DNA of 64,000 nt from Orbicella franksi (GCA_964199315.1 OZ116711.1:21886001-21950000); one strand, 5' to 3'. Counted from the stretch's first letter, positions 405 to 56,184 are shown. A program made the numbers and translations. Notes: generated from the letters alone by a model not told the origin.

Positions 405-953
405 CTTAGCCGTCGAGGACGAATACGGATCATCCAGAATTTCCCAAACAATCGGCTGGTTTCTTTGCCACCACGACGAATTGGGATGATTGTAAAACCG
501 ATCTCGAGGCCTCTCATCCGCCGAGTTTTCATATTTTGGCCTAAAATCTAAGGCCTGCAAGTTTTCTTGAGCGTCCCTGTGTTTCGTGTAATTTGGCCAA
601 CAACACGATTCCATTTGTTGCTCATCTAAGCCCCAGTAAGCGAGCTCTTGCTCGAATAATGGACCGCAAATGTTTCGAGGACAGTGAAGTTTGCCCGTTT
701 GTAAATAGTTCAAAACCTGCGCGAAAACGCCTGGATGTCGATCGAAAAAATATTCCCCTGTTTCTGGATCGTAATCAAGTTTGCCTCGGTTCTCTAAGAT
801 CCTCGAGAGCGGAATATCTGGTATATTTCTCAGCGTACTTATGTACGGCTCAAAGAGTTTTCCTCCGACATTCAAAACAACACGATCTCGCATGTCCTTC
901 TTTGAAGCGAGGGCATCAAGCTTGCTCGTGTCTCTTCTCTCTAGAGGTGACAT
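405..953 (-). CDS. KCNC: Shaw/Kv3-family K+ channel paralog A, first coding exon only (T1/BTB domain); remainder lies left of the window
   Basis: ORF 366..953 encodes VVLNVGG...FFDRHPGVF...GKLHCPRNICGPLFEQELAYWG...MESCCW (HX5CX20CC Zn motif, Shaw-type T1). A phase-0 donor AAG|GTAC at 405/404 is at the same position as in the other paralogs. 183 aa in the window. Symbol is family-level. Confidence 0.9.
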
Positions 954-3900
954 TTTTTCCTTTTAGTCTGTAATTTACGGCATGAAGCTCGCTTGAAATT
1001 CCTGATCTTAAACCGCAAATTTAAAGAAAAGATGACCAGAATTTCCCCCGCTTGTAAATCGAAGATGTTATTTTCTTATCGCATCCGGGTCTTTATTTTT
1101 CCATTGCACCTGTCTGGTTGGCGTTTCCTAGCAACGAATGACATCGATGATTTTATCACCAAGCCTTGAATTAGTTCTATTTCTTTTTCCTCTAACGGTG
1201 ATACAATCTAAGAATAAATGCTCTCGATCAGTTTGCCAAAAAAAAAAAAAAAAGGCAGATTAAAATCAGGAGGCCCCAGATATTCGTCTTATTATACGTC
1301 TATCGATTCTAGGAAAAAACTACTAACGGAAAAATAAAGTGTGGACTCAGTTCACACATCAGTTTAAAAGGAAGCTTCTACACTTTTATGATAACAAATC
1401 TCTTTCTTATAATCTTCCAAGTACAAGTGAAGTGGTGGGGATGTAAGTATCTAAACTTATTTTTAGATCAGCTTATTATTATATACTAGCATAAGTTTAT
1501 TCTTTTATCACTTTGGTTTCCTACGTATGACTATGCAACGAATTTAATTAAGTTAAAGTTAAAGTTAAATATCGTTAGTTTGGTGATGTTCTTTGAAAGA
1601 CCTCGTTGCGTCAACGATACTTTTTAAAATCCTCTTTCAAAGTGATTATTAAAACTTTAAAAAAATTACGGGAACGGCTAAGAAAAAATTGATTCGTTGC
1701 ACAGCAAGGTTAAGTTGTGCCTCTGAGTCTAAACTTTTAGCGAAGAGGACTGTTTATATCGATCAATAAACCATCTCTGCGTATTTGAAGATTTATCGGA
1801 CACTCGACCATCGACCTTCAAAAGCAATATTTTGCACCAAAATACTCCTGTCAATTAATTGTTCTAATACTTTATAACTTTGCTCTCAATTTCATAAACG
1901 TAATCCCTGAATTCATAACTATTCCAGGAATTATTCAAACAGCCAAACAAACAAGTTTCTCTTTTGCTTCGACCACCTGATATATAATTGTCTGTACAAA
2001 CATGTTCACAGTGGTCTTTAACGTTTTTGCCTAATTATACCTTACGTCTACAAACTTTCCATAGCAAAGCGCCTATTTTGGAGTTATTTAAAAAAAAAAT
2101 TCCTGATTAAAAATGAACCCTGAATGCATTTCATTTCAACTTCGTTACAAGGCCTATTTGTAGTTCTCATGATTTACTTGCCGGTAAAATATAGTACACT
2201 GTCTTCGTTCAAGCAAGAGACGTCCATGCTTCTATGCCCGTTATAAAACATTTGGAAGTCTTCGGGCCGAGTAACACGTCTCTCAAGTGCGCGCAGTCAG
2301 AAGGGGATGGAGGGTGGGGAGAAATGCCCTTCCTCGCTGCACTTTACGTTAATTATTCTCCAAACCTGGGATAGCGCACGCATGCGCACTTGAAGATAAC
2401 TCTGGTTATATTCACACCATCTGGAAAATCATTTGCTCAGTAACCTTAGCTTCAGATTTAAAAAAAAAACCTTCAGGTTCGGATCTGTCTCGGAGTGACA
2501 TGAAGAACTAATTGAGAACTAATTAAAAAACGTCCTGCAAACAATCTGCAATCAACACAATTTAGAAAAAATTAATTGCTATGCGTTCAAGAAAATGAGT
2601 TCTTACCTTAAAATAATTTGGTATTCAGTCGTCAGGCAAAAATTCTCGCCAAAGACTGAGAAAGCTTAAAAATATGTTAATTATAGAGTAACTTGTAAAA
2701 TACTAAAATTGCTAAAAAAACAACATTAGTGACCATCTTTACGAGCTCAATAGTTTTATCCGCTCAAGGGAAGTTTGGCATTAAACTTTAACTGAGCTCA
2801 CATTTGCCTCCCCCCCCCCCCCCCCAAAAAAAAAATGCCAGACAAAAAATGGAAAAATTCTACACCAATGACAAGAGGCTCACTGGATATTTTTGTCAGA
2901 TGTCCAATGGTTGTGAACATTCTTAGCTAACTCTCTTTTCCGCCAAAAACATCAAATTGTATTATAAAAGCTGCTACCATGCCTCGATGATAATTTTTAA
3001 CTTAGCCTAGTTAGAGTGACTGGTGCTTAAACTTCCGTGTAGCGTCTGTGATTGGCTGTTTCTTGGTTTTGAATTTTCCCGCGCAGGTAACAGCCAATCA
3101 GATGGAGTCTCGCATCTCTGTAAGGCTGCGTCATTGGCATGGAAATGTTTCTACTCGAACCTAGTTATCTCTCTTGAAAAGTTTTGAACTTAGAAAATTG
3201 TAGTTTTTATCCTCAGCCTCACACATATATATACATTACCAACTACATGGAGAGGCGGCTGGGAGAGTGAAAGGTAAATGTAACGATACGAATTTATTTA
3301 TTTGTTTTATTTATTGTCTCATCATGGCACGAATGTGGAACAAAGGTAAAACCTGTACAACTGACGGGCTCTTATTACTATTTGTCCCACGTTCCTGACA
3401 TTCACGGAGCTTAAAATTTACTATCTTTCATGGTCGCATTAAATTAAATTTCCTTTGTATAGCAGTATAGCATAACCCAGATTCAAACTTTATCTTCAGA
3501 AATAGAAAAAAGTAACATCGGTTTAATAGCAAATGGCCCAGACCATAGTACCTAGAGGAAAATGGCTAAGAAGCCCGGTAAACATCAAAGAAGCAAACAA
3601 ACAGGCTAAGATTTATATTGGAAGGTCTGTGACCCTGTACATCTTTTGGTACTACGCATGAATTACATAATCGCAATACTTCTATTGGTTGGTTGTATGA
3701 GCACACATAACTGTCTTCTGTATTTTACCAGGTTTTGTGCAGGGTCAACTCCTAAAATAGCCAACAAAACATACAACAAGAAGTTTGCCAGTTTTCATAA
3801 TCATTCCCTCTATTAACCATGCCCAGACACTGCAAAATTATGCAAGTGCCTCACAGGGCAGCATTTGGCACGTTGCCCACGCGGCGGCGTGCAATATTAC

Positions 3901-4491: not shown

Positions 4492-7400
4492 TCATACACG
4501 GGTCATATTTTGAATGTTGTCTCTTTTATGTCCTCTAATTGCCGACCTAAGCATATCATCCCTGCCTTCAGATTCCAACACGTTATTGCTCTGTGAAGGC
4601 GTAGAATGCTGCAAATGTTTCAATTCTTGGGGAGAATTGTTATCTGCATATTGCGAATTCCTTGCACTGTCTATACATTTTCTACCCTTTAAATCATCAA
4701 AAGATCCATTTGCTGGTGGCCTGTGTACCTTTTCTTCCGATCTCACCAGAGGCGATATTGGCAATGACGTAATACCTCTGTTTCCGCCAATCGCGTTTCG
4801 TCTCTTGCCTGGCGGAGTGTCACTGGACGCGAGTTCGCTTCTAGACCGAACCCGAGGCTCAGCCGAAAGTTTGTTGGGATTTTTCTCTTCGTTTAAGTTT
4901 TCTGATGATCTCCACGGCGGTGCAGGTTCTATTTTATTGTCTTGTCTTTCTTGTCCCTTTTCATCGTCATTGTAGTCTTTGCTAGAGTCAAACGTTACTC
5001 CTCGTAAATTAACATGAGCGTGACCGGAGTCACGGCCGTCACCAGGGTCACGCAGCGGCCGCATTTCATCTTCCGTTTTTTCGTCCGAAAGGACAGCTCT
5101 TCTACCCTCGTTATTTTTGTGTTCTGATGTGTTTGATTCATTTGACGATTCGTGCGTTCCACCGTATCCTTCCTGTGGCGAGGTTTCACTTGGAGATTTC
5201 CCAAGGATTCCACTCTCCCCCGCGCTATCCCCGTCGGTTGTCGTATAATAACTGTCTCTCTCTTTCTCGTGTGACGATACATCGCCGTTTCCACGGTTAG
5301 CTAGACGTTTACTTCCGCCTCGCCTCCTCTTGCGCTGACTCTGTCTCTTTCCCGAAGGGGTGGGTGCGGGAGAAATTGCCATTCGGCGGTGCGAGGGAGC
5401 CGTTATATGCAACATGACGTCACTGGCTCCTCGGAGGCCACTGGATATGTCCATTGCACTGCCCGTAGGTGGAGACGAAAATAACTCCTCTGCGCTCTTC
5501 TTCACATTGGAAGCATGTTCCACATCGGAGGTGTCCGACTCTAGCCGAGGCAACGTGGAGGGTGGCAGCACCGCTTCCCTACGAGTCGAGCGACACCGAG
5601 GAGTTATCGACGGATTCCGAAGACTCTTTCGCGGCAGAGGCAAGGTTTCGTTGCGTGGACTCGGATTACTGACTGCCTCTGAACTGTCCGAGTTTCCTTC
5701 GTTGTTGTACAAAGTCGACTCTGACACGAGAGCGCCTGCAGCACCAAGTAAAATCGGCGTGCGCTTCTTTTTAGGCAGTTTCAACTGCGCTTGCGCATGA
5801 GAATAAAACAAAGTGAAGTTGCTGCCAATCACAGACACAGGAAGTGCTACGATGAGCACCCCTACGCATGCGCAAATTGCGCCAAGAATCCTTCCAAGAA
5901 GGGACTTAGGATATGTATCACCATAGCCTACTGTCGTCATGGTGATTACAGCCCACCAAAAGGCTTCTGGGATGCTGTCAAAATCTGAATCCGATGGTGG
6001 CTTTAGAGTCTGCAGAAAAAAAAAATACAACCAAATAATAAAACCAAACTTTGATGGCTTTTGAAAGTACTTCTCAATGGTTTTCAAATAAATGGCCGCT
6101 CACCAGGATTTCCTCCACAAACATAACTGAAAGGTTAGGGCCGTATATTACTTCATAGTAAACTGTTCCATTATGGTAAATAGTAGCTTTCATTTGAATG
6201 GTCACACACTAAGATTTCATCCACAAAACTTAAAAGCTAGAACCACCTTGTATAGTATAATAAACAGTACCACATGAAAGTACTGCTCAAAGCTTTCATT
6301 TGAATGGTCACACACTAGGGTTTCATCCACAGATTAAAAAGGTAAAGCCGCCTTGTACACTCGGGGGGGGGGGGTACTCCCTTATATGAGCTATATAGGT
6401 ATGTACGGCCCCAAAGGGTATGATTTTTCAGCCGTTTTGGTCATAATTAGGGTATGGTTTTTGCACTCTAACCTTGATATGGGTATGTTTTTAAGAAGAA
6501 GCCACTTTTTCATTATTATCAAGTTAACAAAAGCCCTTCAAAAATCATGTTTACGGTGATTTAACATTGGTCTAAACTTTTTAGGGAACTTATTATGACG
6601 CGGTTCTGAAACAGGGTTTTAATTTAATGGTTAGGTCATAAATAGGGTATCGAATATTTGGTCAGGTCATAAATAGAGTAGGGAATATCGCAGATCTTGG
6701 TGAAACGGGGTGAAATGTCAACTTTTCTCACCTTTTCTGCATAGAAAACCAACGTCGAGAAAATGACCATGGGAATCAATAGGATAAGGACCAGGAGAAA
6801 TAACTCCCGTGCACTGGCTCTCAAGGTATGTCCAATCACTTGCATGCCACTCATGGTCCGAAAAAACCTGAATAACCGGAAAATCCTGATCAGTCGGAGA
6901 ACGAACAGAAAGGTTAGAGTGCCTGTCACTGTACTTGACAAGTTGACGTAAAGGGGAACCACTGATGTTATGTCGACCCATGTCATAAATGTTTTAAAAA
7001 ATTCGGGCAGTGAAGGGCATGTGCAAAGCCTGGCCAGAAAGTCGGCTGAAAACCACACCAGGTAGAAATATTCCATGCCCTCGAACAAAGACTTGTAGTC
7101 CTCACTCAGGTCTTCAATTGATTCCAGGCAAAATGTGAGCACTGATAAGACTATGACAATCAATGACACCATAGCAAACATCTGAAAAAAAAAAAGAGAG
7201 AGTAGAGATGTAATGCTGGTCTGTGCAGATCTCGGTGTGCTCTCATCCCCCCGGGGATGCCCCCTGTAATGGCCTATCGGGGAGGCTCCGCCCAAAAGGG
7301 GTTACCTTTCCTAGGGATTTCACAAGTTGGGGTATAGAAAAGGGTTGGGCAATCGGAATATCTTGACTCCGGCCACAAGATGAACTGAAAAAATAATACT

Positions 7401-10400: not shown

Positions 10401-12825
10401 GTTTCAATACTTTGCTTTCTCTTAAAACATTAATAATAAGTGTCGGCTGTAAGTAGCTTTGTTATACGTTCGTTGATTGCAATTTCGTGCCAGGGATAAC
10501 AGCCAATACGTCTTTTGCACCAATAAGAAAGTTTTCGCGTGGACAAGGAAAATAAACTATGAAAAAGAACATTTTGTTGTTGGAGTCATGGACATACCAG
10601 TGACTCTGTCAAATGCGTTTTATATATATAAAAAGCTCAAGATCGCGAAAAAAGTATTAAACTCGTGGACAGGTATGTTTTTGATTATTAAGTAAACAAT
10701 TTGACACGGATCTACTTTAGAGCAAGACCCAAGGCGATTCTTTATTTCACCTGAATACATATTAAAATTATGTTTCGCTGAAGGCTGATGAAAACAGTTC
10801 CTCATTTCTTTCCCCTGAAATGCACTGAAAATTTACAGATGGCCTTGAACTCGCGAGCGAATCAATGCAATTTCTTTTTTGATACTGCATAATTTTACCT
10901 TCAACGATACTTCCTGGTTTCGAGAAAAATCCTTGCAAACTCGACTGTAGATTTAATTTATATGAACCGTAACAGTGAAATGAGTCCATTTAGGTATTTT
11001 CAAATGATAGGGGTCGATCGATTCAAAGGAGTATTCTATCATTGCTTTCATTAGATAGTTAACAGTAAATATGAAGAAGGGGTCGAACTTAACTGTTATA
11101 TGTCGTGTAATAGGAAGTATGCCCTTTTTAGACTTTTAGAATGTATTTTGTTGTTCCCGCAGTAGACGGTTTGGCTATTGTTTATCGGAGCCAAAACATA
11201 TATTGTATCAAAATTGTTTCGACGCAAAATTAAAATGCACATTTCTAGAAATACTGGTGTTGAGCTGTTGTTGGTTCGATCTTAAGAGCCCGTTTTCAAA
11301 ATATCGAATGCAAAGCAAGTAGAGATAATAATATTTATTGATGAAGAAGAAATCGTCTACAAGATGATATTTCGCAAGCTGATGCAAACAGTTATTACCA
11401 TAATTAATAATGAGAGAATTTTCTTATAACTGCCATGTTGCTATAGCCATCGGGTTTCATGTCATCATTTTTAACAGTAGGCCATTGTGTTGACATGTTT
11501 TCTGACAGCGAAACGCGCTTAAAACTCAGAACGCGATTCTACATACACAGACAACAATGTTGACGAATTTTTAAATATAAATAACATCAAACAACACCAT
11601 CGCTTCGAGGCTTGGGTTCTGCAGTGAGATATGTGACCTCTACACAAGTTGGAAGCAAATTTACGTTTAATTTGACGTAGTCTGCGTTAAGATGACTTTC
11701 AATTTAAATGCTTAAAAATAAAAAAAATTGTTTTGAGTGGTAAATCGATACGCACTCCCACAAGTATTTTAGCTGTAGTTTCAAAACGCATCCACTTGAC
11801 AAGTCAAAATGCCAGCTCGATTTTTTAATTTGCATACGCGCAGAAACGTGCAAAATGAAAACCGAAAAGCAAACGAAATTCCGTCTTTAGGCACAAGCTC
11901 CGACTCTTATCGATTTAGCCGGAACAACTAAAATCACGATTTCGCACTCAAACGGTAGAAACTGACGACGGTTGTGCAACTACATCTCACTTCCGTCCTA
12001 AATTTGAAAAAAGAAAAAAAAAAAAAGTATTAAATTCGATCTATTACATGTAAATTAGTCGCCTGCCCTGGTTGAAGTAAAAGCGGAAAAAAAATCGCGA
12101 TACCTTCACAAGAAACTTGCTGAGTAAAATTGCTTTTATAAACATCAAAATTTTTGTTGTTATTATTATTATTTAATTTGCCTTTAGCAGTGAAATGAAA
12201 AAAGAAATAAGGTAAAATAATGTAGATTCCAAACCTGCGCGTATTTTGAAGAATATGGCTGCTCCAACATGGCCCAAATTTCTTTCTTCCATTTCGTTCT
12301 TGAAGATTCCTTGTGTCGAACTTTGAACGCGCTGGCTTCATTTTCAGATTCCTCGACGCTTTTTTGCAATCCTTCGAATGCCTTCAGTGTCGCTTGTGCA
12401 TCTCGATGCTGGGTATAATTACTCCAGCAACACGGCTCCATTTGAAGCTCGTCTATCCCCCAAAACGCCAGCTCTTCCTCAAACAGTGGTCCGCACACAT
12501 CACTAGGAGTATGAAGTTTGCCGGTCCGATAGTAATTGATAATGCTGGCGAAGACCCCAGGGTGGCGGTCAAAAAAGTACTCGTTGTTTTCCGGATCGTA
12601 CTCGGCTTGTTTAGAAGCATTTTCCGCGATCCAGGCTAGCCTTGAATCCGGTACAACCCTAAGCGTGCTTAAGTACGTTTCGTGGCGATAGCCGCCTACG
12701 TTGATAATAACCCGGTCCTTCGCTAGGACGCGCGCTGGCAACGAGTCTTCGAAGTTGGACTCGGATTTCGCCCGCGCAATTCCCAGTCCTGGCTCGAGCA
12801 TCGTTCGAGTTTGGTCCGTCTGCAT
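4492..12825 (-). CDS. KCNC: Shaw/Kv3-family K+ channel paralog B, 3 coding exons, about 852 aa
   Basis: Exons 12825-12235 (T1; donor CAG|GTTTGG), 7181-6732 (S1-S5; acceptor TTTCAG|ATG, donor AAG|GTGAGA) and 6009-4492 (pore [19 protein letters not shown]6, [15 protein letters not shown], long tail; acceptor CTGCAG|ACT). All junctions are phase 0 and the frame is continuous. Confidence 0.93.
6185..6358. repeat. 106-bp minisatellite, about 1.6 copies, in gene B intron 2
   Basis: agctttcatttgaatggtcacacacta...tttcatccaca starts at both 6185 and 6291. Confidence 0.8.
7247..7640. mobile_element. MITE of a CCCGGG-terminated family (related copies or ends at about 6359-6712, 18292-18611, 38244, 49564-49856, 59082-59341)
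   Basis: Ends read ccc(c)gggg...gagt..ccccggg; several copies share ctccc(a/t)tataaaa(a)ggacggg-like and gggagt motifs. Family assignment is by eye. Confidence 0.55.
7991..8157. mobile_element. Second copy of the 4107-4286 MITE
   Basis: Shares the core gagttcaactcccacaggatt..tttggtac and the end gtgaaaacgctctat. Confidence 0.7.
9215..9673. mobile_element. About 460-bp MITE in gene B intron 1 (inverted sister copy 53671-54196 in gene D intron 1)
   Basis: Ends tacacttttttgttataagaa / ttcttataaaaaatgt. The interior (ccagcctgcaggc..agaggcctgatatgacg; ttagattacagcgtatgac) is reverse-complemented at 53.9-54.1 kb. Confidence 0.75.
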
Positions 12826-20096: not shown

Positions 20097-20283
20097 CAGT
20101 TATATAGTGTATCAAACAGACCCTCAGAAACAAAAAAAAAAGAGAACTCAACCCTTTTCAGAGTATTTAGTGCTTTCCACGACTATGCCATTTTCTATTC
20201 CTCTCTAACCGACAACTACCAGAATTATCGATTATCGACTCAGTTATACACTAATCACTGATTCACCAAATCCTGAATTTATA

Positions 20284-23200
20284 TCACGTCCGATGAGTCT
20301 GTAAGTCTGTTATTGACGAGAGGCCCGAACTCCGTGCTGTCCGACGTCTGGAGTACTTAGTTTCAACCGGTGACATTGGTTCCACGTTCTTTTTGGGCTC
20401 TTCATTCTCATTTTCATCTTCTTGTGTCTCCTCATCGAATGATTCATTTACCATTCCTCTACTATCTGTATTAAGAGTCACTGTTAATGTTGGTTTGACA
20501 AACCGGACTGCATGGTTCTTCTTTACTGGGGTCCCCGGTCTCCCAGGGGTTCCCGGTCTACAGGGAGAACCCGGCCGCGCACTGCCATTTACCAAATGTT
20601 CCTTGTTCTCTTTCTGTTTCATAGAAGCGAGCACGTTGTCGATGTCATCAATTTCGAACTCTTCACTCTCCCGGTGAACAATAGGCGGGCATTTTGGTGA
20701 TGATTGTTCAATGGGTTCATCTATAAATCCTGTGATAGCTTCCGAGAGCTCCGGTGGATCCACCGTCAAGGTATTCCCGTAGTGAGGGGGGCTTTTGGGA
20801 GGAGTGTCAATCGTAGTACTCTGAGTACTGGTGTGGCTCTTTTTTCTGTCGTCCAGAGGTGGACTGTTAACTGCAATGAATTCTTCACTGCTTCTAGAGC
20901 GAACTGGGAAAGACTGTCGATGAGCCATGCCCCCAGCGTACAAAGAGGACCGTGCTCGTCTAGCCCTAGAGAAGACGTGTAAATTATTTGTTAGTTCAGC
21001 AGGTAGCGCAGAGAACCCGGAATGATTTACTATTTGTTACACTGGATTAGAGGAGCTTATTTTGGCCACATAGAAAATCACCTTCAAATTGAAGTCATAA
21101 AGAGTCATTTAATAAGATAGAGAAGCATTATAGAGATAACAAAAAACCATAAAGTAACAAGAATGGTTAAGGATGGAGAAGATTGACACGGATTACAAAC
21201 GACGAAATTGAAAAATTTAGGCTTAACTTTTCAAGATGCACAAACCGTGACGTAGCTTCTTTAAAATATTTCAGTTACCTCCAAACGTTGATTTAGTCAC
21301 ACGGTATACGACGCGTGCGCATTTCATGTCCAATTCCAAATTATTGTCGCAATTCAAGCTTAAGGTGTCCCTGTAGTTTTACGATTGCCCGCGCGCATAG
21401 GACAAAAGCTCAAGTAATCTGCGCGCGCTCAAAGGAAAACGTAAGTGTTTTTCGATTTTTGTGACGTCAACATGAGGACAAAAAGCAAAACTGACAGTGA
21501 ATTTTCTCGGGTTTCCTTTGGTGATTTTTTTTTTAAATTTGGCTCAGTTGTAACCACATACAATTACTATAAAATACTCTACTTTTGTTAAAATCTGTCA
21601 GAGCTAATCTAATATATTTAGAAGAATGACAAATTACTGAATATTGGAAAAACCGTCTGAACAACCTTGACTTTTTAGCAATTCAAAATGTCAGGCAATA
21701 TCATTTCCATGATGTCGTAAAGTATGAAAAAATTTTACCGAAGGAAAATATAAATATTAAGGAGTTTAGGCCAAAATGAGGAATATATCTGCCTGTCATT
21801 AGATGAGATGTTGCCATGGTAACGGTCTTAATCCAAAAATTGACAACCAAAAAAATAAGCCTTATTTTAACAGTACCCATACTGGTAAATCTCGACAGGG
21901 AAAACTTTAAGAGAAATTAACTAAGTTTCCTTTTCTAACTCGCGCTCTATAGGGCGAGTGTTTGTAAATACTCTAGGAAGCCACCTTAAAGACGAAACCT
22001 TGCAAGCCGAATAAGTATATACCTGATACAGAATTTTATTATTGTTGTTCACAAGCCTGGTACCTCGTGTTTTGGCTTGCCGCTATGTTGGATAATGTTT
22101 CTTTACAAACGTCCTGTTCTTGCACTACGAAGTCTAAACGAATTCATGAAAATAAAAACTGGTAGTGGCCTGTAGCTGTCTGCGGCATTCCAGCTGGGGT
22201 TTTTGACGATAAGCCCTTTGCAGGACCTGGTCACTCCATGGTACCAAATCAGCCATGCTGGGACGCAAGTTACACAGTGAGACTTCCAAAACAGTGAAAA
22301 GTCAAGCTGGACTGGTGTGAGTTGCTTTGGTTTGAAAGTCCTACCGTGTAACATGCGTCCCGGCAGCATGGCTGATTTTGTACCATGAGATCGGATCGTG
22401 CAAAGAGTCTATCAGGGAGAATCCTTGTTTACAAAAATTGCCTCTTTAACATAAGCGATACAGTTTCTGACGGAGCTAAAGAAAGCATTAGCTCTGAATA
22501 TTGAACGGGCATAGCACGGTTAACTGTCTCAATGCAAGGAATTTGAGCCCGATGTATTGAATACTTTTTGTGCAACGCGGGTTAAAAAGCTCAAAATTTT
22601 ACAAAGAATGTATGAGCTCATTAGCGCTTTTGCCACCCATAAATTTTGCAGTTTTTGAAAGTCAATTTTTCCTCGAATTTTTACATCCAAAGAGTAAAAC
22701 ATTTTACCAATTACTAAGTTTCACAAGTTCTTTAAATGTTTGTAGTCAATTCATTTCTAACGTGATGCCTTCATTGTAAAAAGTCATATGTTAATGAGGA
22801 AAAGTACAAGCAATGACGTCATTGAATGCTGAGCTTACCTTCCCCGATATGGGTGTACTTTCGTATCTCCACCCAGAGATCCATTAACAACGGGTGACGA
22901 CTTTCTCGTTTCCAGCCTTCCCTCTGTCATATCTGTACTAGTCAGGTCCTCGCTTGGTCTTGCGGACTGCAACATCAAGGCATTTGCAGCACCAACCATG
23001 GGACGCTTTGATTTCTTAGGGAGTTTCATCTGCGCCTGTGCATGCGAGTAGTATAGTGAGAAGTTACTGCCGATGATAGAGATTGGAAGCGCAGTGATGA
23101 TGATTGACAGCGCGGCACAAAGCGCACCAAAGACTTTCCCAGTGGGTGTTATTGGAACATCATCGCCATAGCCCACCGTGGTGATAGTGATAACGGCCCA

Positions 23201-26200
23201 CCAAAACGAAGCCAAGATGGAAGAAAAGTCGTCGGGATTGGCTCTCTTCTCCGCCAGATAAGCACAGCTTGCGAATATAATAACCGGTACGATCAGAAGC
23301 AGAACCAGCAGCATCAATTCACGTGAGCTGGCGATCATTGTTTGCTTAAGAATCTGGAATCCAAGATTAACTTTAAAAAACCTGAATAGGCGGAACAACC
23401 GGCATATTGCTAGGATATCGTATTCGATACGAGGTTCCCCGTGCGGGTAATCATTTGTCGTTAAAATACGAACATAAAATGGCCAGATGGCAATAAAATC
23501 AACCCAGTTCATTATTTGCTTGACAAAGTCCTGTTTGCTTGGGCAAGTTGCTAGTCTGAGTGTGAACTCAATAGTAAACCAGATTCCGCAGACGCCTTCG
23601 ATAATTACCATGGCCAGGCGGGCTGACGTATTCCCAGATACCTGCTCAAGAGTTTGCACACAGTAAGCCAGGACAGACAGAATTATAAACATCAGTGACA
23701 CCATAAACATCATCTGTGAGCAAAGAGAGAAAATTACTAGTAAATTTTTATGATGCATAGATCTGTCTTCAACTCCATGAAAACTTACAGAGAGTTTTGT
23801 TAGGTAGAAAAGCACAACAGAGATGGTAATAATCACCCAAATTAGTACAAGAGTGCTTAAGATCGGTGGAGATCAATTGAGACGTAATATATCAAACACG
23901 AAAGACCGTGTTTAAGCACATTTCCAAATACCGAGAAAAGAGTAGAAAAAACGACATGTATTCGGAGCACTTTTGACTTCGAAGTATTTGAACATGTTGT
24001 TAGACACTGTCTTGAGTGTTTGATAAATCTTCTCAATCGAAACTAAACTAAAACAAAACACAATGCAACAAAACAAAAGGAAACAAAAACAAGATTGGAA
24101 TCTACCAAATGCGGTATCGTAGCAACCGCGCGTGTGCCCGCGTGCAAATGAAACACTGAAACACATTCATGATACATAGAAGCTCGAAGGTCCTGCTATT
24201 GTTAAAAAACTTATAGGCTCAAACAACACTCATAAGGATAAATCTGGTGTTAACTTTTAGTATCTACTTCTTCATATAGGTCCATACAGTATGCACATAG
24301 TATCCACAATTATAGTTTCACATTGCCTAATCCACCGAAACTTCTAATATATTGTCATTACTTTTTTTTTTATCTTCTACTGAGTGAAATCAAATTCTAC
24401 TCAATTGCAACAATGTAAACTACTTCAGATAAAGCTCTCTTTTGCATGTTATAGATGCAACCTTGAGAAACGTTTTGCTCAACGATTAGATTTTGATTAA
24501 GCTCTCTCGTCAACCAAATTTTTGGAGAAAAACTTTAATTTAACTGACAATCTGATGTGTCTAGTTCGCCAATATGGTGGCCATGAGATGATCTGAAACG
24601 AAAAGTTATGAACAGATTTTACCAAGAAGGTTAGTAAACGTTAGTTTTCTCCGCTTTATAATGCCGCAATAAGGTTCGACGTTTGACCCAACTGAGTTTG
24701 TCCAACTGAATTTAGATCTAAATTCGAATTAAGTTCGACGTTTGATCCAACGGTCAAGCGTTACCCGTTTGGTTCGACTCAAATTGCAATTTAGCGCGTC
24801 TCATGTGAAGTTCAACATTTGACCAGGACCTTAAGTGATACTTAAAGACAGTTATACTGTTCGAAAATTTCTCGGGCACTATGTATGTACTAACCTTACT
24901 TGTACGTACGAAAGTTGTGTAATTATTTTTTTAAAAACTTCATTTTAATTTGAAAACTATTATAACTGTTTGGGCTGGAAAACATGCTATAAATTTATAT
25001 ATTTTCTTGGTTTACTCGATCGCTTTTGGGTGATAAGTCGTTAGAATTTCAACGATGAAAACCAAGTAACGTTAGATCTCTACAAGTTGGCGAGGAAGCC
25101 TTGAACAGAAAGAACCTTGCTCAGGTAAAGAGACGAAATGGATTTGGCACTTTCGAACGTTTACTCAAGGTTTTCATGTTAGCTTGCTAGTTACGTAATC
25201 CTTCTCGTTCTTTCCATGCAACATTAATCATTCTTGGTTCTTTTTGGTTTATCATTGTCTTTCGATATTTTCAGTGGCAACTTAGGCACAATTAATAAAT
25301 AAAGAATTAGTTGCATTTGGCTGATGGAAATTACAATAACAGAGAAAATACAAATTGCAAAGAGAGAAAATAAACTAAAAATCCGGAACGACTTCAGCTA
25401 AACATCAAGAGGATCAAAGCCCAGTTTCCCTCTTTGGGTTCCCGAACAGGAATGATGAGAGCCAGTTGATTTTTGTAGTTTATATTATAATATTTGTATA
25501 ATAGTGTTTTTTTTTAGCATTTGTAACTAACGATTTTCCGTGCATAAATAAAGATAAATAAATGTTAAGTTTGGGCCAAAAATCAGTTATAAACGCACTT
25601 CACTGTCCAATGACAAAACTACCAAAAATTATCCCTTCCTCATTAAACAATAAGTCACAAACCAAACTGCTTGGTTTTCCTGTAAGGGGCACTTAACCAA
25701 ACCTAACAAGAAACTTCAAATTTTGAATTCCCTATGAGATTTTCCATATTTCAATGATAAAGTATTATTTTAAGTTTCGTTCTCGATTTGAAAGTAATTT
25801 TGATACAGTTCTTCATTTAATAGCAGAGTTAAGTAACGGTATGAAGCAAGGGCCGTGTACATCTAAAAACAGAGTAGGATTAATTTCAAATATTTTCTTT
25901 CATACGGCCATGAGGCTAAATCGCGGGGAAAACACGCTGGTATTAATCAGTAATTGAAAGCAATGTGGACACTGTGCCATGTTGGAGTTTAAAAGCTATT
26001 TTGCAATTAATTATTTATCAAGAAGTTACATGTTCAGCATAGGCGTTCGTTTAATGAAGAAAACAGATGCTCCTAGTATCAAAAATGAAAAATTATAGTT
26101 GTTCATCAGCCAGGTAATAAAAGTTTGTTCATCAAAATTATTTACGTGAACTTCAAATCAAGGTTTTATTAATTTTTTTGTAAAGGATTAGAAGCAAAAT

Positions 26201-26460: not shown

Positions 26461-28599
26461 GGGAACGAAAATTGTTACTTTTACTGGGTTGAAGAAGATT
26501 GACGTAGCGATGAAAATTTGACGACTTTTTAGACAAGGAAAGTGTAGAACGATAATTAATCCATTTTAAATGCCCGACTATGGCAGTAATTTGTTTATTA
26601 GAAGGCGTGCATGATTCAAATGTCCTGGTTCACCTAGAGACTAAATTGTAATTTACATCTGTGTGAAATTCTAAACCCAGCACCGGTAGTTGTAATTCTA
26701 ACGTTTTATTTTCCGTGTATATGTTAACAGTGTTGATAGAGAATTAAAAACAACATTAATAACCTTTTCAGAATTAAAAGCCCGGAAAGTACGTCTGAGA
26801 AAAATAATGTCACACGAGACTTTCTCAGTTAGGCCCTCGGGATGTTTATGTGACAGGCATTCGTATGAATATACCATCCTTTTGTAACTGTTTATCTTAG
26901 AATGATGAAAGATTAATCGTTCTAAATGTTGTTTTTACTTCAGATTAATAAAACTATGAAATGCCTCCGCTAAATTGTTGATAAACGAAACTGACTCATG
27001 AAAAGAGAACATCAAAAAAACATACATTCATCAAAGCGGAATTATAAATATAGTGCTGACTCTTTTGAGTTGAAGTTTTATCCGGTGATGCTTCTTTCAC
27101 AGCAAAGCTGTTTATATCGAGGTATATAAACAACATTTACATTTGGATATTTCAAATTCAGCTTTACTACATCTATATGGGGTAATATTATGTCACAACG
27201 CGTTTATTTTTTTGCCGGGAAAGTCGTGTATAATATCGATTACTAAATACTCTCTCAAAACTAAGAGCGAATAAATGCGACACACACTTTGGTTTGAATT
27301 TATTCAAGGGATAACTTAATGTACGATTGCTACACAGTTGTATAAATATATATGAATGTTTAAACGAAGGTTCTCAGTATTCATGACAAGTCAAGAAAAG
27401 AGTGAAACAAAAAACTAGAACGCGCGCATGCATTTCTCGAAAGGAGATTTGCCACAACAGATGTTTGGAAAATTCCGGGTTTAAACAAAAACTTTAACTG
27501 CCCGAAAGGAAAATATCACGATTATTGCACGATAGCAAGTTACCGCTTCATGAGAATTCACGTATTTTAGGGATATATACAATAATACAAAAGTAGATAA
27601 TTCTGATATCAGCTTTTCATAAAAAGGACTAGATTGATGAAATTATTTTTTTCCCAACAATGTCTCATTTGCCTTCGTGCTAAATTCAAAACGGCTGAAC
27701 CTTTTTTTTCTTTGTGATAATTATAATGTTATTTCTTGGGTTTGAACGGTTCGCAGATAGCATCATTTTAAGTAAAAACGAGTGTATTATTTCGAAAAAA
27801 AAAGATAAAACCAGAGATCGAATTTCACCGAGAACGGGTGGTGTTTTCTTTGCTCATTTCACAGACATTTCTAGCCTGTCAGCACGATACTTTCGAATTA
27901 ATTCATGAAACGCCGCCATAACTCCCAGTGTAGAAAGGAGAAACCGCGCGGCACGTTAAACACTCATTAATAACGGTATATATGATCACCATCCTTCCGA
28001 ACGTTTTTTCAAACAGATCTTCAGTGTTAAAACAAGGGTCTCAATCGACTTACCCTAGCTAGCTTTGAAGATCGCTGGTGTTCCAAGACGTTCCATATCC
28101 TCGGTTTGTATTTTTGCCAGCATGATTGTTCCCCTCCAAAATTCTCAGATACAATCTCGCCAAGTTCAGAATTGCAATCGTCATCATCGTCCGACATCTC
28201 CGCCGCTTCGAAAAACTTCAAGTTTTCTTGCGCTTCGCGATGCTGTGTGTAATACGTCCAGCAACATGGTTCCATCTGCTTCTCGTCGATCGCCCAAAAC
28301 AAAAGCTCATCTTCGAAGAGCGGTCCGCACACGTCGTGTGGACTATGTAGTTTGCCTGTGCGATAGTAATTTATAATGGCTGCGAAAACGCCTGGATGTC
28401 GATCGAAGAAAAATTCATTCCTTTCTGCATCGTAGAACTCCGCACTGTTATTTTCGTTTTCTATGCACCAGGCAAGCCTTGTTCCGGGGAAATTTCGAAG
28501 AGTGTTCCTGAAGGTTTCGTGTCGAACGCCGCCGCAGTTAATCACAATGCGGTCCCGTCTTGTAGGACTTGGAAGATTTTCTTCTGTTTCTTCGGACAT
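20284..28599 (-). CDS. KCNC: Shaw/Kv3-family K+ channel paralog C, 3 coding exons, about 700 aa
   Basis: Exons 28599-28054 (T1; donor AGG|GTAAGT), 23713-22839 (S1-S6, TITTVGYGDDVP; acceptor CACAG|ATG, donor AAG|GTAAGC phase 2) and 20965-20284 (acceptor CTCTAG|G; joins in frame to ORF 20284..20943). Total 2103 nt. Confidence 0.9.
21364..21985. mobile_element. TTAA-flanked non-autonomous DNA element (Kolobok-like) in gene C intron 2
   Basis: TTAA|GGTGTCC ... AAGCCACC|TTAA; related ends at 37840, 46073-46194 and 46211. Confidence 0.6.
22209..22412. mobile_element. Fold-back MITE in gene C intron 2
   Basis: Arms ccctttgcagg..catggtaccaaatcagccatgctgggacgca / tgcgtcccggcagcatggctgattttgtaccatg..gtgcaaagag. 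Confidence 0.7.
26403..26457. repeat. (TA)n microsatellite, about 27 units
   Basis: Direct reading. Confidence 0.95.
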
Positions 28600-37783: not shown

Positions 37784-38130
37784 GGAGGCAGCGTGGCCGA
37801 GTGGTTAGGGCACTGGACTTGTTTGAAAGTTTTGAAAATTTAAGGTGGCTCTGAATCCTATGTACAGAACGTTTTTAAACTTTGCCAAAAGTTAGGTCTT
37901 ATCATGCTTACTAAACTTTGATGATATAAAAAAAATGCACCGTGCCGTTTTTGAATTATAAGCTCCTAAAACTGTAATTAAGGGTGTTTTTAGCAAGTCG
38001 TACTGTTGCTCTGGTAGCCTATTGTGTCACAAAAATGATAACGTGTTCACCGATGATTAGGCACTTTTTAACTTGGAAAATATCTATTATTTTCCAAGTT
38101 GTAGTGGTGGAACGATTTCATTCCATCACG

Positions 38131-41541: not shown

Positions 41542-41574
<33 letters not shown>

Positions 41575-43609: not shown

Positions 43610-43704
43610 TCAGAATTTTTCTTTGTCCCACGCTCGTGTCATGTTGATTAATTCACCTTCACAATTTTATCTTAGTGTCCGACAACTGGAAACAGTATAA
43701 TTCC

Positions 43705-46194: not shown

Positions 46195-46496
46195 TTAAAT
46201 TTTCGAAAATTTAAGGTGGCTCTGAACCTACCTAAGATGCCTTGGAACACCAATGAAAACATGTAAATCGGACGAATTAAGTCGGGTTTGCAATGGACTG
46301 CCCGTTAAGTGACAAAACCTTATGTGATATTTTCTTTTTCATTTCGGTAGGAATATATGGGGAAACATCTATAGTGACAACACAGTTGCAAAAATACCCT
46401 GAAAGGGAATCAAGTTCAATATCCAGGTTAGCTTACAAAGAAATTTGACGTAAAGCGGCCTAAAATTTAGACGAATAAAAATCTGGTTTGATAAAT

Positions 46497-47501
46497 ATGG
46501 CGACGACGATACGAGCGAAAGCAAACGAATGCAAGTATTGCGGCCAGGTGTTTGCTCAAATATCAGCTTATAAGGAACATGAACGAACTCACTCAGGGAT
46601 CAAGCCGTGTTCATGCAAGCATTGTAAAAAGTGTTATAGCCGGTCACCAGATTGCAAGCAACATGAACGAACTCACACAGGAGAGAAGCCATATTCATGC
46701 AAGCATTGTAAAAAGTGCTTTAGCCGATTAGCAGATTCCAAGAGACATGAACGAACTCACACAGGAGAGAAGCCATATTCATGCAAGCATTGTAAAAAGT
46801 GCTTTAGCACGCTGTCAAATTGCAAGCAACATGAACGAACTCACACAGGAGAGAAGCCGTATTCATGCAAGTATTGTAAAAGGGGCTTTAGTCAGCAATC
46901 AAATTGCAATAGACATGAACGAATTCACACAGGAGAGAAGCCGTATTCATGCAAGCATTGTAAAAAGTGCTTTAGCCAGTTATCAGATTGTAAGCAACAT
47001 GAACGAATTCACATGGGAGAGAAGCCGTATACATGCAAGCATTGTGGTAAGTGCTTTAGCCGATCATCACAGTGCATGGTACATGAGCGAATTCACACGG
47101 GAGAGAAGCCTTATTCATGCAAACTTTGTAAAAAGTGCTTTAGCACGCTTTCAAATTTCAAGCGACATGACCGAACTCACACAGGAGAGAAGCCGTATTC
47201 ATGCAGGCATTGTAATAAGTGCTTCAGCCAATCATCAAATTGCAAGCAGCATGAAGAAAAACACGCAATACATGTAGACAGTTCGTTAAAACGCAACCAG
47301 CGTGGCCAGAACCGAAAACTTAGAAGACATCTGGAGGAGCCAACGACTACTCAAGGTAGCAAAAAGTATGGTAAGTTGTTTTCTTCGACGGCAGAAAATT
47401 TAAGCCAAGTTGAAAGCCTCACCTGTTGGATCTGTCAGGAAGAATTTAGTAATGAGACATGTCTCATCCATCATTACGATGATCATATGAGATCAAAATG
47501 A
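46497..47501 (+). CDS. Tandem C2H2 zinc-finger protein (9 linked fingers plus 1 C-terminal finger), 334 aa
   Basis: ORF has repeated TGEKPYSC-x2-C...H-x3-H units with 84-nt periodicity and a final CWIC...HHYDDH finger. First ATG is at 46497 with an in-frame TAA at 46476-46478. No effector domain is visible. Confidence 0.9.
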
Positions 47502-49932: not shown

Positions 49933-52900
49933 TTAAGCTTTAAATCCGTTTGCAAGGTCATGCTCGTTTCCCTTTCCCGTTCTGTGGTGGCTATCCCTCA
50001 CCACCGTCGACGACATTTCACTCTTATCAATACTGTTTTCACTAGGTAAGTTTAGAACACCAGCCTTGTCCAACCGAGTCATCTCAACGCCAACTTTAAA
50101 CGAGGGCACAGAGTATATTTGAGATGGGGATAAACTTTGAGGACTTTCTAACTCCAAAGCAGGATTTTTATAACTCCCCCGCGCGTCCGCGGGTGACACG
50201 CGGGCCTTGTTCCCGCGGGAACTTTGGGGGCGCCCGTTTTTCTGCGGAGAATTTTCAGTTTTTAATTCCACCCATGACCTGGATAGAGAGCTACTGGATT
50301 TTTTACGACGGGATGAAGGGATGGTGGTGGACATTTTCTTTCTCTTCTTCGTTCCACGGCGTTCGGAAAGAACCGACGGAGGTCTCGTGTCTTCTTCAAT
50401 GATTTCCTCGCTCTCGTGCATCGAGTTTATAAGTGTGAAATTTCTGGGGAGGGCGGAAATAGTAGGAAGTTCCTCCATTTCATGAGCCGATGGCAAATGA
50501 GCGATCTTTTCTGATCTGTTGTCCACATCCCCGCTTCCCACTGTTTCTTTTGTGGTTGGACTTTCTATCTTTGTTTCGCTCTCGCTTTCATTTTCATTTT
50601 CTTCTTCATTACACGTGTCATCTCGACGAACCTTGTTTCTCTCGTACTTGCTTGGACCGATATACACATCACCATGAGCAAAAAGAGTGTTTCGAGAGCG
50701 TCGATGATAGCGCCTAAACTTAGTAGCCGAGCCTTCTCTTGACTCCTGGGTCAACACCTCCGGCAATTGCCCGTTCTGTTGTAATGACGTGGTGCTGGTT
50801 GGTGACTGACCATGTCTAGGGTTCACGCGCAGTTTAGCCTCACAAATTAAGCGTCGCTTTTTCTTCGGTAGGCTAAGCCTGGCTTGTGCATGGGAGTAAT
50901 ACGTGGAGAAATTATTTCCTATCACAGAGACAGGCAAAGCTACGATGAGCACGCCGAAAATGGCGCATATTCCACCAATGATCCTACCAGGGATTGTCTT
51001 AGGCACCATGTCACCATAGCCAACGGTTGTCATGGTGATAATCGCCCACCAAAATGCTTCTGGGATACTTTGAAAATCAGGTTCACTTCCCTGTTTGGTT
51101 TCGATCTCGAATAAAACGCTGGAAAATACCACAACTGGAATTAGCAAGATTATCAAAAGAAGGATAAGTTCTCTGAAGCTCGCTTTGAGCGATTGCACGA
51201 TAATCTGCAAACCGCTTGTAAAAGCGAACACTTTCAATGCACGGAATGTTCGTATGAGCCTCACCGCTCGCAGAAAGTTTAGGTTTCCACTACCAAGAAT
51301 GATGTTTTCGTAAAATGGAAGCAGGGATATCAAATCGACCCAGGTCATGATTTCCTTAAAGAAAGCGATCTTGTCGGGGCAAAATATCAACCTGGCTCCA
51401 AATTCCAGCGTGAACCAGGCACAGAAGGCGTACTCAAACCCTTGAATGTATTTATTATTTTGGTCCTTTACAACCGACCAGGCACACATTGAAGCAACCG
51501 AGGCTAGAATCATGAACAGGGACACCATAGCAAACACCTGAAGAAAATAAACAAATTAAATGTGAAGGTAAGTTGGGTTGAATGTTCCTAAAGTAGATAC
51601 AGTGAACACCCCGTTAATAGGGCCACATCGTAATTGCGGCCGCTTTGTTCTGGCCCAAACAAAAGCTCAGTCAGTCATTTTGTTATTTAAAGAACCCCTT
51701 GAATCCGGCCACCCGTTAACACGGCCCCGCTGGAGACTGTACTTATTGGCAGGTATATTTATTAGTCTTTTGTTAAGTGTTCTATTGAACTACTGTTTTC
51801 GGTTGGTTTGGCTGAGCACATTGCAAAACTGTTTCTTAAAAAATTGATGAGCTGGACAACAACAACACCAAAAAAAAAAAAAAAAACTGCGCCCGAACAA
51901 CCATAGAAAACAAAACAACAACAAAAACTTATAGTAAGAATGAAAAACGTTCTCTTGTTAAAAAGATTAAAAACATTTAAAACATTTTTTAATCGTTTAA
52001 GACTGATAGGCGAAACTTCATGTTTTAACTCCTTTTTAACCAGAGAAAGTTTTTGTTAAAAGAAAGTTAAACGTCGAGTTTATAGTTGCGATGCACTCGG
52101 CTACAGCTAGCTAGTTTTCAAACATGCCACTTAAACTGAAAGAAAGAAATATTGCAAATAAACATAATAGGGTTAAAAATTTCAACTGATGAGAGGCAGA
52201 CCAGCTGGCTATTTACAAGCATGACCGAGGAGCTGAACTAGGTTCTACCAAGAAACAACTCCAGTTAAGTGGTCAGAGCGGGACTTGAACCCGCGACGTC
52301 CGGTTTTCAAGTCCGGCGGCCTCACCACTCGGCCACGCTGTCTTATCCTGGTTAATGCTCCGTTTTTGTGAACAACAACTTGCATGTGCTATATGTAACA
52401 GGACGCCAGTTTTAGAAAGCGTTGAATGTTGTCCGTCAGTACGTACGTGGCATGTTGGATAATCTAGTGTTCTTTCGAGTGAGGCCTTTGATTATTGTAT
52501 TTTGTCAAGTCAATGTTTTAAGCTTTCGCCGATCGACGGCATCATCGATCAGGGATAGAAAATATTTCGCTCTAAAACTATATATTGTAAGGCGGGTAAT
52601 GATGTGTGCAAGTTTTCGTATGCACGACTGATGAGTTTAAATAATACGTCATATATAGGAAAACTGAAGAAAATCTTCGAATCCCTTTTCTTTTAATCTA
52701 GCAGCAGGAATCTTTTTTACAAGTGTTTTTTTTTCTAACAAAAGGGGTCATCCTGCGAAATATTATGTATATGTATGTATGTATGTATTGGCATTATCGG
52801 ACAATCTAGTTCATATTATCATCATTACCACTGAACCATTTATTCAACATTGTTAAGAAGGAATCCTCCACAAGTGCGAGTAACTGAGGTGGACAAAAAT

Positions 52901-55900
52901 TGTACCAAGGTCATTTACATTGTTTTACAAACTTCTGTACGAGTGTTTTACATATCTTCTCAAAAGAAATCATTTCTAACAACACTAAATGACGAAAACA
53001 AATTTTGAAGTTCATATGAAACATGAGGTACTGGTGAAATGAAGCTGATGATGAAATTTTACCTGTGATGTGACAGTTTCCCTGAACTTTGAAATTTCAC
53101 ATTTTCTCGAGTCCCCATGGTAAATTTTATTGATGTTATTTCAGCGATTATTTATATGTTTGGCTTTTAGAAAATACAGAAAGGATTGTAATATACTTAA
53201 AGTTACTCTAGTACAGGGTTTTTGTCCATTAAAAGCTGATTTTCCCTCGGATTTCGTCTTAATAGTTTTTGCAACGTCCAAAAATTTCGCTGACCATACG
53301 CTTTCATTATTCCATTACCTTTTTGTTTCTTGATTTTGATTGCGCAAATGCGGAAGTGTTGGTTGGGGGCCCAAGAAAATTGTTTCCGCTTACAGTTCCG
53401 CGCAGCCGTTCATATAATTTATTGCGACAACTTTTCATCAGGCATTCTTTTCAAATTCTTCCCGGAACCTCAGTCAATTTTAAGAAATTGCTGGAAATGT
53501 CGCCCGGTTTACTCTAAAGAAAATATATTAAGGGGTGTTTTCCCAGTGTGCGGTGCTGGTAAATAAGGGGTGACAAATTCATCCTGTGAAAAATTAGATA
53601 TTCGAATTCTGCTCACATTTGCACTACGTAGGAGGACTAATTGTACGCTTGCGGCGAAAGTCTGAGACTTTAGACTCTTTTTTTTAAATATCTTTTATAA
53701 GAATATTGGGGCTGAAATTTGCGAAATCTTAAGAATACTTTAGGAATAAACCTGAGGATAAAATTTTGAAAAGAATATAATTTTGTATGTTGAAAATTTG
53801 TAAATATAATACAATAATATGTTAAATTTACGTAAACCGTTTAACATTCTTCCTTTTTCTAAACGGAGAAAAAAAAGTACTAGCCAAAAAGGAACAAAAA
53901 CAGCGCTAGCCGTATGTTTGATGCTAACACATTTCTGCAAGACGTTATGTGCGTCATATCAGGCCTCTATGCCTGCAGGCTGGTTCCAAAATTACGTACT
54001 TTAACACCATCCAGACACCAAATACATTCGAAAACAGAAACGTCATACGCTGTAATCTAAGAATGTTCAGTGGAATATTTTCAAGAAAATATTCATGAAA
54101 ATACTTTTCAGCCTAAAATCGGCAGAAAAATGAGATCATTTAGCCTCGGCCGGAAAAAAACAATGTTTCTATAAAAAAAAAAAAAGAGAGTGTGTATTTA
54201 CTGCACGCGCATAAAAACAATTTTGTTATTAGATGAACTTTCGTTTCCAAATTTGATGTCGATGCGAACCTAGCCTTAAATTAATTTGACACGTTCGCTT
54301 CTGAGCATTATGTGGTAGGTTGTGGCTAGCCACTTAGAATACATAAGTCTTTATATTTATTTGCAGAGGTTAAAATCTTAAGGGTATCACGGCCGTCATT
54401 GAAACTTGAACACACACAGAAAACAAGAATTGGCGTCTCTAATTTCAAAGTTTGATTTGTAAATATATATCTTGTCTGAGTTTTACGGTCGATAAGTATT
54501 CCTGCAAGAGATAATTCAACAAGCCACTAAAATTAATTCCAAAGTGGTTAAAAGAGGCGTGATTCACCATGACGAAGAAACTTTTCTTTTCATTTTACAG
54601 CAAAACTAGCCTGTAAGGTCAGTTTAATTTTCGTCCATTTACGATTTTACGTCTTTCGCTACTTCCAAGGTTTGTAAGGATTAGATAATAACAAAGCAAT
54701 ACTGATCTGATAGCAGACTTCGGTAGATAAAATAAACTACAGCTGAAGACCCTTCACTGGGAAACTAAACAGCTGCATAACAAAAAAAGGAAGACTCTAA
54801 TAGGTTCGTCAAGTTGTTTTTGTTCGTAATTTTTTATTCATTTTTTTTAAACACCGGAGGTTTCTGGAAAGATCTCTACACTTTTGACCGTTTACCTATT
54901 TTCCCAGCCTGAATTATTTTCTCTAACAATTAGTTTCCATAAATACGGAACTGGACCGCTTAATCTAGAATTCCCGCTGGTAAAAACCAGCCGCCCTAAT
55001 TTAAAAGTTGAACAAAGTGAGTAGACATTGAAAAACATGACTATGCAAAAAACACAAAGGCTATAAAAATATTGGAATATTAAAGCATTAATGCTTTCAA
55101 TTCGCTTCCAATGGGAAACTTTTATATATAGTTTTGCGTGCAAATAAGCAGGGCTAAACTTAAGGGGATTAAGATCGCATCAACCACATTTATAATTCTT
55201 CAAAAAACATTAAACTAGCCAAATTCGTCCATCTACACAAAAAGCCCCTGGATTTGCCAGCACTCCACGAAATCCTGCTTAAGAACATATTTTACGTAAT
55301 TTTAATATTGCTGTTTATATTTAATAATTCCTATTGTGTACAGGCGTTGTTTTTTTGTGTATTTATTCAGAGGTCGTGGGCAAAATAAATAATTCCCCAT
55401 GTATTCAACTTGCATTACGATAATTCAATTCATGGCGTCTTGTTTTATCAGAATAGATTTTTTACGTAAGGTAGGAAAATATTAAAACATTCGCGGGTTC
55501 ATAAAGGATGAGAACACTGGATTAGTGGAATGAAATACCGGTTAAGAAGCTAAAATCCAATATTTCTTCAGCAGCACTGGCAAAATTGAAAATGAGATTG
55601 TTTTCGGGATGGATTTAGAACTTTACTTTGCTGAAAAAAATTCAAAAAAATTCTACGTTTTTCTAAATATGTTTCGCTACCTTTGCCCTGGTTGATGAGT
55701 GAGCATCATCGAGCACAGCCCAAATCTTTGGTCGGTAGATTGTCCAACATGAAAGCGATGACATTTGGCGATACGATGAATCTAAATCTGGGGACGAATT
55801 ATCATCGTCATCATCCGAATCCTCAAACTCAGGTCCGACAAAATCTTTCAAATTTTTCTCAGCATCTCGATGTTGACTGTAGTACGGCCAACAACACGCT

Positions 55901-56184
55901 TCCATCTCTTTTTCTTCGATTCCCCAGAATGTTAGCTCCTCTTCAAAAAGCGGTCCGCAAAAATCCCTGGGAGCGTGCAACTGGCCCGTGCGATAATAGT
56001 TGAGAATGATACCGAATATTTTAGGGTTTCGGTCGAAAAAATATTCTTGCTTGGTATCCCCGTTAATGAAACTCCCCGCCAGCCAAGCCAACCTGGTATC
56101 GGGAATAGTTTGTAGAGTGCTTGCATATGTTTCATGGCGTTTTCCTCCAACGTTGATTATAATTCTGTCACTTTCGGTATCCAT
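49933..56184 (-). CDS. KCNC: Shaw/Kv3-family K+ channel paralog D, 2 coding exons, about 702 aa (possible 61-aa longer N-terminus from ATG 56367)
   Basis: Exons 56184-55681 (T1; donor AAG|GTAGCG) and 51537-49933 (acceptor TTCTTCAG|GTG; S1-S6, [34 protein letters not shown], long tail). Phase-0 junction. Confidence 0.93.
52170..52342 (-). mobile_element. Second tRNA-derived SINE family (head fragment also at 37785-37821, + strand)
   Basis: Minus strand reads gacagcgtggccgagtgg...ctTGAaa...gcgggttcaagtcccgc followed by a non-tRNA body. A and B boxes are present; the acceptor stem does not pair. Confidence 0.7.
53671..54196. mobile_element. MITE, inverted sister of 9215-9673
   Basis: Reverse-complement similarity along the length of the element. 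Confidence 0.75.

Follow-up and report, generated by a model that had tools for sequence, protein, structure and literature searches.

Voltage-gated potassium channel genes are as numerous in cnidarians as in mammals, and most of them encode putative regulatory subunits. Here we describe a tandem array of five Shaw (Kv3) genes, A to E, part of which lies in a 64,000-nucleotide stretch of the Orbicella franksi genome (C14:21886001-21950000 within 497 Mb; "the window" refers to this whole stretch). The closest described relatives are the cnidarian ShawR subunits (Li et al. 2015; Lara et al. 2023, PMC9989356), of which genes A-E are direct orthologs. Hexacorals have 10-12 Shaw genes, comprising two alpha subunits (Shaw1 and Shaw2) and ShawR1-R10 (Lara et al. 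2023, PMC9989356). A degenerate S6 gate and a Shaw T1 domain are common to the published ShawR subunits and to A-E, which differ in being copies from another coral species. The five genes are new members of a published family, and both the family and its regulatory role are already known.

More distant systems share some of these features. Vertebrate Kv3.1 (KCNC1; PDB 7PHH and 8F1C) and the Shaw T1 structure 3KVT have the same HX5C...CC motif, six-transmembrane core and GYGD sequence. Compared to Kv3.1, the coral genes have the PVPVIV gate replaced, a deletion after S4 in four of five cases, and long, unrelated C-terminal tails. The mammalian silent subunits Kv5, Kv6, Kv8 and Kv9, partners of Kv2, and a silent Kv3.5 described recently have the same proposed T1-guided heteromerisation and degenerate S6 gates, but they originated independently, and the mammalian genes have not been reported to form a single tandem array. 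Local tandem triplets also occur among mammalian Kv1 genes (Kv1.3-1.2-1.8 and Kv1.6-1.1-1.5), where they have been kept since the gnathostome ancestor. Those far younger and mostly intronless triplets encode Kv1 alpha subunits, whereas the coral array encodes putative Kv3-type regulatory subunits.

We consider it probable that the coral array is an ancient, same-strand tandem of five intact Shaw genes (with transcripts for A-D) that was produced by local duplications, each gene encoding a putative regulatory subunit. Gene models were built from open reading frame (ORF) listings and Pfam domains with left and right flanks of 40 kb and 50 kb added to the window. On the minus strand, Pfam identifies four BTB_2 (T1) exons, three of them with Ion_trans exons downstream. 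All four T1 exons close at a phase-0 GT donor at an identical alignment position, after ...SS(x)3 plus K, Q or R and directly before S1, and the S1 exons are entered through polypyrimidine-AG acceptors, also in phase 0. Every intron in the models of A-E is GT-AG and every ORF is intact. Among named proteins, the best matches come from Oculina patagonica and Desmophyllum pertusum, both stony corals.

Along the minus strand the order of the genes is ShawR1 ... ShawR9 - ShawR10 - ShawR8 - ShawR2, with R9, R10, R8 and exon 1 of R2 inside the window. Position 405 is the final base of gene A exon 1, and 56184 is the gene D start codon. A first-pass annotation, made from the window alone, had described four minus-strand Shaw T1 exons with a common phase-0 intron before S1, and these are found at the exact coordinates. 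Its estimate of 4.1-5.1 kb for the first introns also agrees with the models (5053 nt in B, 4340 nt in C and 4143 nt in D). It had further proposed that the array runs on past the left edge. Exons 2 and 3 of gene A do lie there, but a genome search with the T1 domain and transmembrane core found no further Shaw gene in the next 40 kb to the left of gene A, and the fifth gene is found on the opposite side, beyond the right edge. On the left, the array is bounded by a BCCT-family transporter gene, which carries a PLAC8 domain and is located downstream of gene A, and we reject a leftward continuation of the array.

Membership of the Shaw family is evident from both the T1 domains and phylogeny. 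The T1 domains of all five genes score 166-200 bits against human/rat Kv3.1 (166 for A, 200 for B, 187 for C and 170 for D) and 142-173 bits against 3KVT, compared to at most 106 bits against Kv2.1 (87 for A, 106 for B), 90 against Kv4 and 58 against Kv1. In the alignment, the zinc motif HX5C...CC, the GYGD filter and the S4 basic repeat are kept in all five. The six-transmembrane core is supported by Ion_trans and Ion_trans_2, with a filter that reads T(V/L)GYGD, and S4 has 3-5 basic residues across the five genes, with just three arginines in gene E. A careful maximum-likelihood tree of 72 sequences, rooted on one Shal1 and two Shaker-type genes from the same genome, places all five inside a Shaw clade with support of 100/96, as expected from the earlier assignment of the genes to one Kv subfamily.

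Searching the genome with the T1 domain and the transmembrane core recovered 11 Shaw-type genes. The six outside the array are a pair at C14:10.37-10.40 Mb, a pair at C4:30.89-30.92 Mb (each pair on a single strand) and singles on C6 at 2.15 and 3.60 Mb. Based on scaffold sharing in Stylophora, the C14:10.4-Mb and C4 pairs are probably R3/R4 and R6/R7. Within the Shaw clade, a 57-row clade (96/98) unites the five array genes with the C14:10.4-Mb pair and leaves out Shaw1, Shaw2, insect Shaw and the C4 pair. The genes of this genome in that clade, seven in total, are all on chromosome C14. The first-pass annotation had set cnidarian expansion against a small number of bilaterian Shaw genes, a contrast that is only partly true, as Jegla 2012 counts 13 in Lottia and 9 in Capitella.

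Comparison of the N-terminus and core with the Stylophora supplement (PMC9989356) identifies A as ShawR2, B as ShawR8, C as ShawR10, D as ShawR9 and E as ShawR1. In that supplement, all five Stylophora orthologs are on one scaffold, NW_019218096.1. The tree pairs four of the genes one-to-one with Nematostella sequences at bootstrap values of 99-100 (A with P0188, B with P0042, D with P0030 and E with NvShawR1), and gene C falls in a 100/100 clade of anthozoan sequences without gene names. P0188 is 72% identical to gene A, and Nematostella ShawR1 (P0206) shares 68% identity with E, compared to no more than 44% with any of A-D.

The sequences that follow S6 are long (424 aa in B, 284 aa in C and 308 aa in D) and differ from gene to gene. 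Tail-to-tail comparison between paralogs found no significant similarity (best E 0.26), so the description of three complete genes with unrelated tails in the first-pass annotation stands. Between species, the picture is one of conservation. For gene B and its Desmophyllum ortholog, the ratio of nonsynonymous to synonymous substitution (dN/dS) is approximately 0.13 over 425 codons, and for gene D it is 0.05 in the core and 0.10 in the tail. Comparison with Desmophyllum thus shows purifying selection on the tails of both B and D, with dN/dS of around 0.1. The gene D core is 92% identical to that of Oculina, and the gene C tail is recognisable in Nematostella, another anthozoan and Desmophyllum. 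The conservation of the B and D tails, given that tails are unlike between paralogs, argues for paralog-specific functions.

Genes A, B, C and D have spliced-transcript support. Gene A is matched over its full length, at 97% identity, by the transcript-derived P0172 (542 aa). The transcript-like P0041 (844 aa) spans the gene B junctions AQ/MFAMV and AEK/TLKPP, and P0001 spans the gene D junction AK/VFAMV. Expression of gene C was assessed by aligning RNA runs to 20250-23750. Intron 2 of gene C (1873 nt, GT..AG on the minus strand) is skipped in 5 raw poly-A reads of run X23 and in contigs of runs X5 and X1, and one RNA contig links the beginning of exon 2 to the end of exon 1 (loose end 23714). 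The Desmophyllum model P0132 joins exons 2 and 3 identically. Unspliced ORF calls of gene C stop at a TAA at the exon 2 donor. We rejected this as the end of the gene, as the TAA belongs to the GTAA donor and is removed by splicing in RNA. Within the same intron, the segments 21069-21302, 21420-22000 and 22473-22706 have summed RNA-contig depths from thousands to 30,000, with many loose ends. These segments look like abundant transcribed repeats that also occur elsewhere in the genome.

A common strand, a common first-intron position and first introns of similar length might be expected if the genes were assembly or allelic duplicates, or decaying pseudogenes, of one Shaw gene. We give this explanation almost no weight. 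The cores of the five are 43-53% identical to one another, which does not exceed their identity to Shaw1, and the tails are dissimilar. Furthermore, four of the five have a named Nematostella ortholog and C has its own strongly supported clade, the ORFs are intact, transcripts are spliced and dN/dS is 0.05-0.13. Taken together, these observations rule out assembly or allelic duplication and pseudogenes, including the allelic or assembly origin that had been named as a possible objection to the first-pass annotation.

The prediction that the five genes encode regulatory subunits follows from ShawR orthology and from the degenerate S6 gate. In this genome, the canonical gate LPVPVIV(N/S)N is found only in Shaw1 and Shaw2, which are on chromosome C6, 1.45 Mb apart and outside the array. 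The corresponding sequence is LPVSVIG in B, D and E, LPISIIG in C and STSASVIG in A. Accordingly, the second proline of the gate is replaced by serine and one valine by glycine in all five, and A is also without the first proline. In addition, a 3-residue deletion after S4 removes one basic residue in all of the genes except D. Degeneration of the gate has been reported in regulatory and not in alpha subunits (Pisupati et al. 2018; Lara et al. 2023; PMC6279357, PMC9989356), and such regulatory subunits reportedly require an alpha subunit (PMC9989356, PMC6279357).

Alternatively, the five products may be conventional alpha subunits that assemble into functional homotetrameric channels of Kv3 type, differing in their kinetics. 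Several considerations point in this direction and weigh against a regulatory role. The GYGD filter, the T1 zinc motif and the S4 arginine repeats are intact in all five, which would allow homomeric function, and purifying selection is strong. Gate degeneration marks R subunits and does not cause the R phenotype (Lara et al. 2023, PMC9989356). The phenotype was shown in Nematostella per regulatory-subunit cluster (cited via PMC9989356 and PMC6279357), and thus not necessarily for each of R8, R9 and R10. Counter to this, the genes are orthologs of genes that were called ShawR from functional work in Nematostella, the second gate proline is gone in all five and both prolines in A, the deletion after S4 is accompanied by loss of a basic residue in all but D, and alpha subunits are reported to be free of gate degeneration. 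On balance, we regard the alpha-subunit explanation as unlikely.

If the genes do encode regulatory (silent) subunits, as their sequences suggest, the following mechanism can be proposed. Each product would join a Shaw1 or Shaw2 tetramer via its Shaw-type zinc-binding T1 domain, probably in one or two of the four positions, and would alter gating. A paralog-specific conserved tail could bring its own trafficking or modulation signals. A predicted complex of the Shaw1 T1 domain with the ShawR8 T1 domain had a score of 0.02, which points neither for nor against their assembly. The first-pass annotation had viewed the locus as a kit of co-assembling subunits. This view needs some refinement, as all five are R orthologs with degenerate gates, and the candidate alpha subunits are on C6.

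The order of genes in the array is partly shared with other cnidarians. On Nematostella DS469515.1, the R2 ortholog is 4.5 kb downstream of the R8 ortholog on the same strand, both have three-exon structures as in genes A and B, and 9.7 kb upstream of R8 there is a match to the R10 tail. The coral array and Nematostella thus have the same-strand order R10-R8-R2 in common. In another anthozoan, a single ENA contig carries an R9-like gene followed by R10-like and then R8-like genes, all on one strand and within 18 kb. In Exaiptasia, published identifiers place R8, R9 and R10 on one scaffold. For scyphozoans we have identifiers, not DNA: the R8/R2 locus numbers are 016428; 016429/30 in Rhopilema and 011529; 011531 in Sanderia. 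These consecutive or near-consecutive numbers do no more than suggest R8-R2 adjacency.

Phylogenetic distribution also bears on the age of the genes. The gene B clade is sister to hydrozoan sequences in the maximum-likelihood tree (100/99). In the taxon lists of Lara et al. (PMC9989356), ShawR2, R8 and R10 are present in Hydra and scyphozoans, R1 in one octocoral and R9 in hexacorals only, and at least three lineages (R2, R8 and R10) are reported to be older than the cnidarian ancestor. The proposal of an old local expansion in the first-pass annotation is well supported by the low identity among paralogs, by the named one-to-one Nematostella orthologs of four genes and by the conservation of order and strand in both anthozoans. 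The papers searched, including PMC9989356, make no mention of tandem linkage or synteny of ShawR genes. Conserved clustering is thus apparently unreported, and is a modest addition to what is known of the family.

It is also conceivable that the cluster reflects secondary gathering of dispersed paralogs or lineage-specific rearrangement. Two observations speak for this and against simple local duplication. The tree does not join neighbouring array genes as sisters: R8 groups with R9, and yet R10 lies between them in the array. Further, the neighbour of R8 differs on Desmophyllum MU827797.1, where R10 and R8 are followed by an inverted R9 (L038 28432-30042) instead of R2, due either to rearrangement or to a scaffolding error. 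Arguing for the opposite case, order and strand are repeated in Nematostella (R10-R8-R2) and the other anthozoan (R9-R10-R8), the locus numbers in two scyphozoans suggest R8/R2 adjacency, and all seven members of the clade are on C14. We therefore consider secondary gathering very improbable, and prefer ancient local duplication.

Around and upstream of gene B exon 1, non-coding sequence is collinear and conserved with Desmophyllum (11553-13941, with further blocks up to 19500). This includes a 2.4-kb alignment of 72% identity, despite a synonymous divergence (dS) of approximately 0.9. The conserved blocks at gene B may be promoter or untranslated-region elements. Intron 2 of gene B contains a short repeated element (6062-6359), which has several matches of 78-92% identity in the orthologous Desmophyllum intron.

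A more speculative idea, to which we assign a low probability, is that R10-R8-R2 is a microsyntenic block dating back to the cnidarian ancestor, to which R9 and R1 were added later, and that it has been kept by shared cis-regulation, with cell types choosing their regulatory Kv3 subunits from one landscape. The collinear non-coding blocks between genes C and B of two corals and the jellyfish R8/R2 locus numbers are compatible with shared cis-regulation, without showing it. If true, the block would be a combinatorial excitability locus, loosely like other clustered, co-regulated families.

The gene models and other features of the region are listed below.

Table 1. Gene models of the Shaw array and other features, in window coordinates (negative values and values above 64,000 are window-equivalent positions in the flanks).
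Feature	Position	Strand	Description
Gene A (ShawR2 ortholog), 542 aa	953-405, -489..-621, -1367..-2313	-	last two exons left of window
Gene A exon 1	405..953	-	N-terminus and T1; BTB_2 E 1.8e-26; donor AAG/GTACCT, phase 0
Gene A exons 2 / 3	-489..-621 / -1367..-2313	-	S1 / S2 to stop; outside window
Gene B (ShawR8 ortholog), 844 aa	12801-12235, 7181-6732, 6009-4492	-	
Gene B exon 1	12235..12801	-	T1; BTB_2 E 8.9e-29
Gene B exon 2	6732..7181	-	S1 to S5; Ion_trans; GT-AG borders
Gene B exon 3	4492..6009	-	pore, S6 and 424-aa tail; Ion_trans and Ion_trans_2
Gene C (ShawR10 ortholog), 700 aa	28599-28054, 23713-22839, 20965-20284	-	
Gene C exon 1	28054..28599	-	T1; BTB_2 E 1.6e-27
Gene C exon 2	22839..23713	-	S1 to S6 and proximal C-terminus; Ion_trans E 8.7e-37; phase-2 donor AG/GTAAGC
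Gene C exon 3	20284..20965	-	remainder of tail; based on RNA joint 20964/5 to 22838/9
Gene D (ShawR9 ortholog), 702 aa	56184-55681, 51537-49933	-	
Gene D exon 1	55681..56184	-	T1; BTB_2 E 7.5e-27; Oculina P0003 starts at same Met
Gene D exon 2	49933..51537	-	S1 to S6 and 308-aa tail; Ion_trans E 3.6e-42
Gene E (ShawR1 ortholog), 512 aa	98339-97758, 96028-95072	-	window-equivalent; 34 kb past right edge
BCCT transporter gene	-18.7 to -12.8 kb (L029 1280-3256 and 6667-7239)	-	window-equivalent; beyond gene A
Integrase_H2C2 ORF fragment	37496-37843	+	E 9e-10; C-D spacer
C2H2 zinc-finger ORF	46488-47501	+	intact, 337 aa, ~10 zinc fingers; zf-H2C2_2 E 1e-47; between C and D
DUF5578 exon-like ORF	58671-59018	+	E 4e-29

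Gene B has a second in-frame ATG upstream of the modelled start, at 12825. Among the plus-strand features, the Integrase_H2C2 fragment is probably a retroelement remnant, and the DUF5578 ORF is probably part of an unrelated gene located between D and E.

Looking across the entire analysis, its contribution consists of gene models, expression evidence and conserved linkage for a locus at which five of a coral's nine putative ShawR genes share one strand in less than 100 kb. A sea anemone, and perhaps jellyfish too, retain part of this gene order. The locus thus offers a handle on whether these subunits are co-regulated, and on which heteromeric Kv3 channels were selected during early nervous-system evolution.

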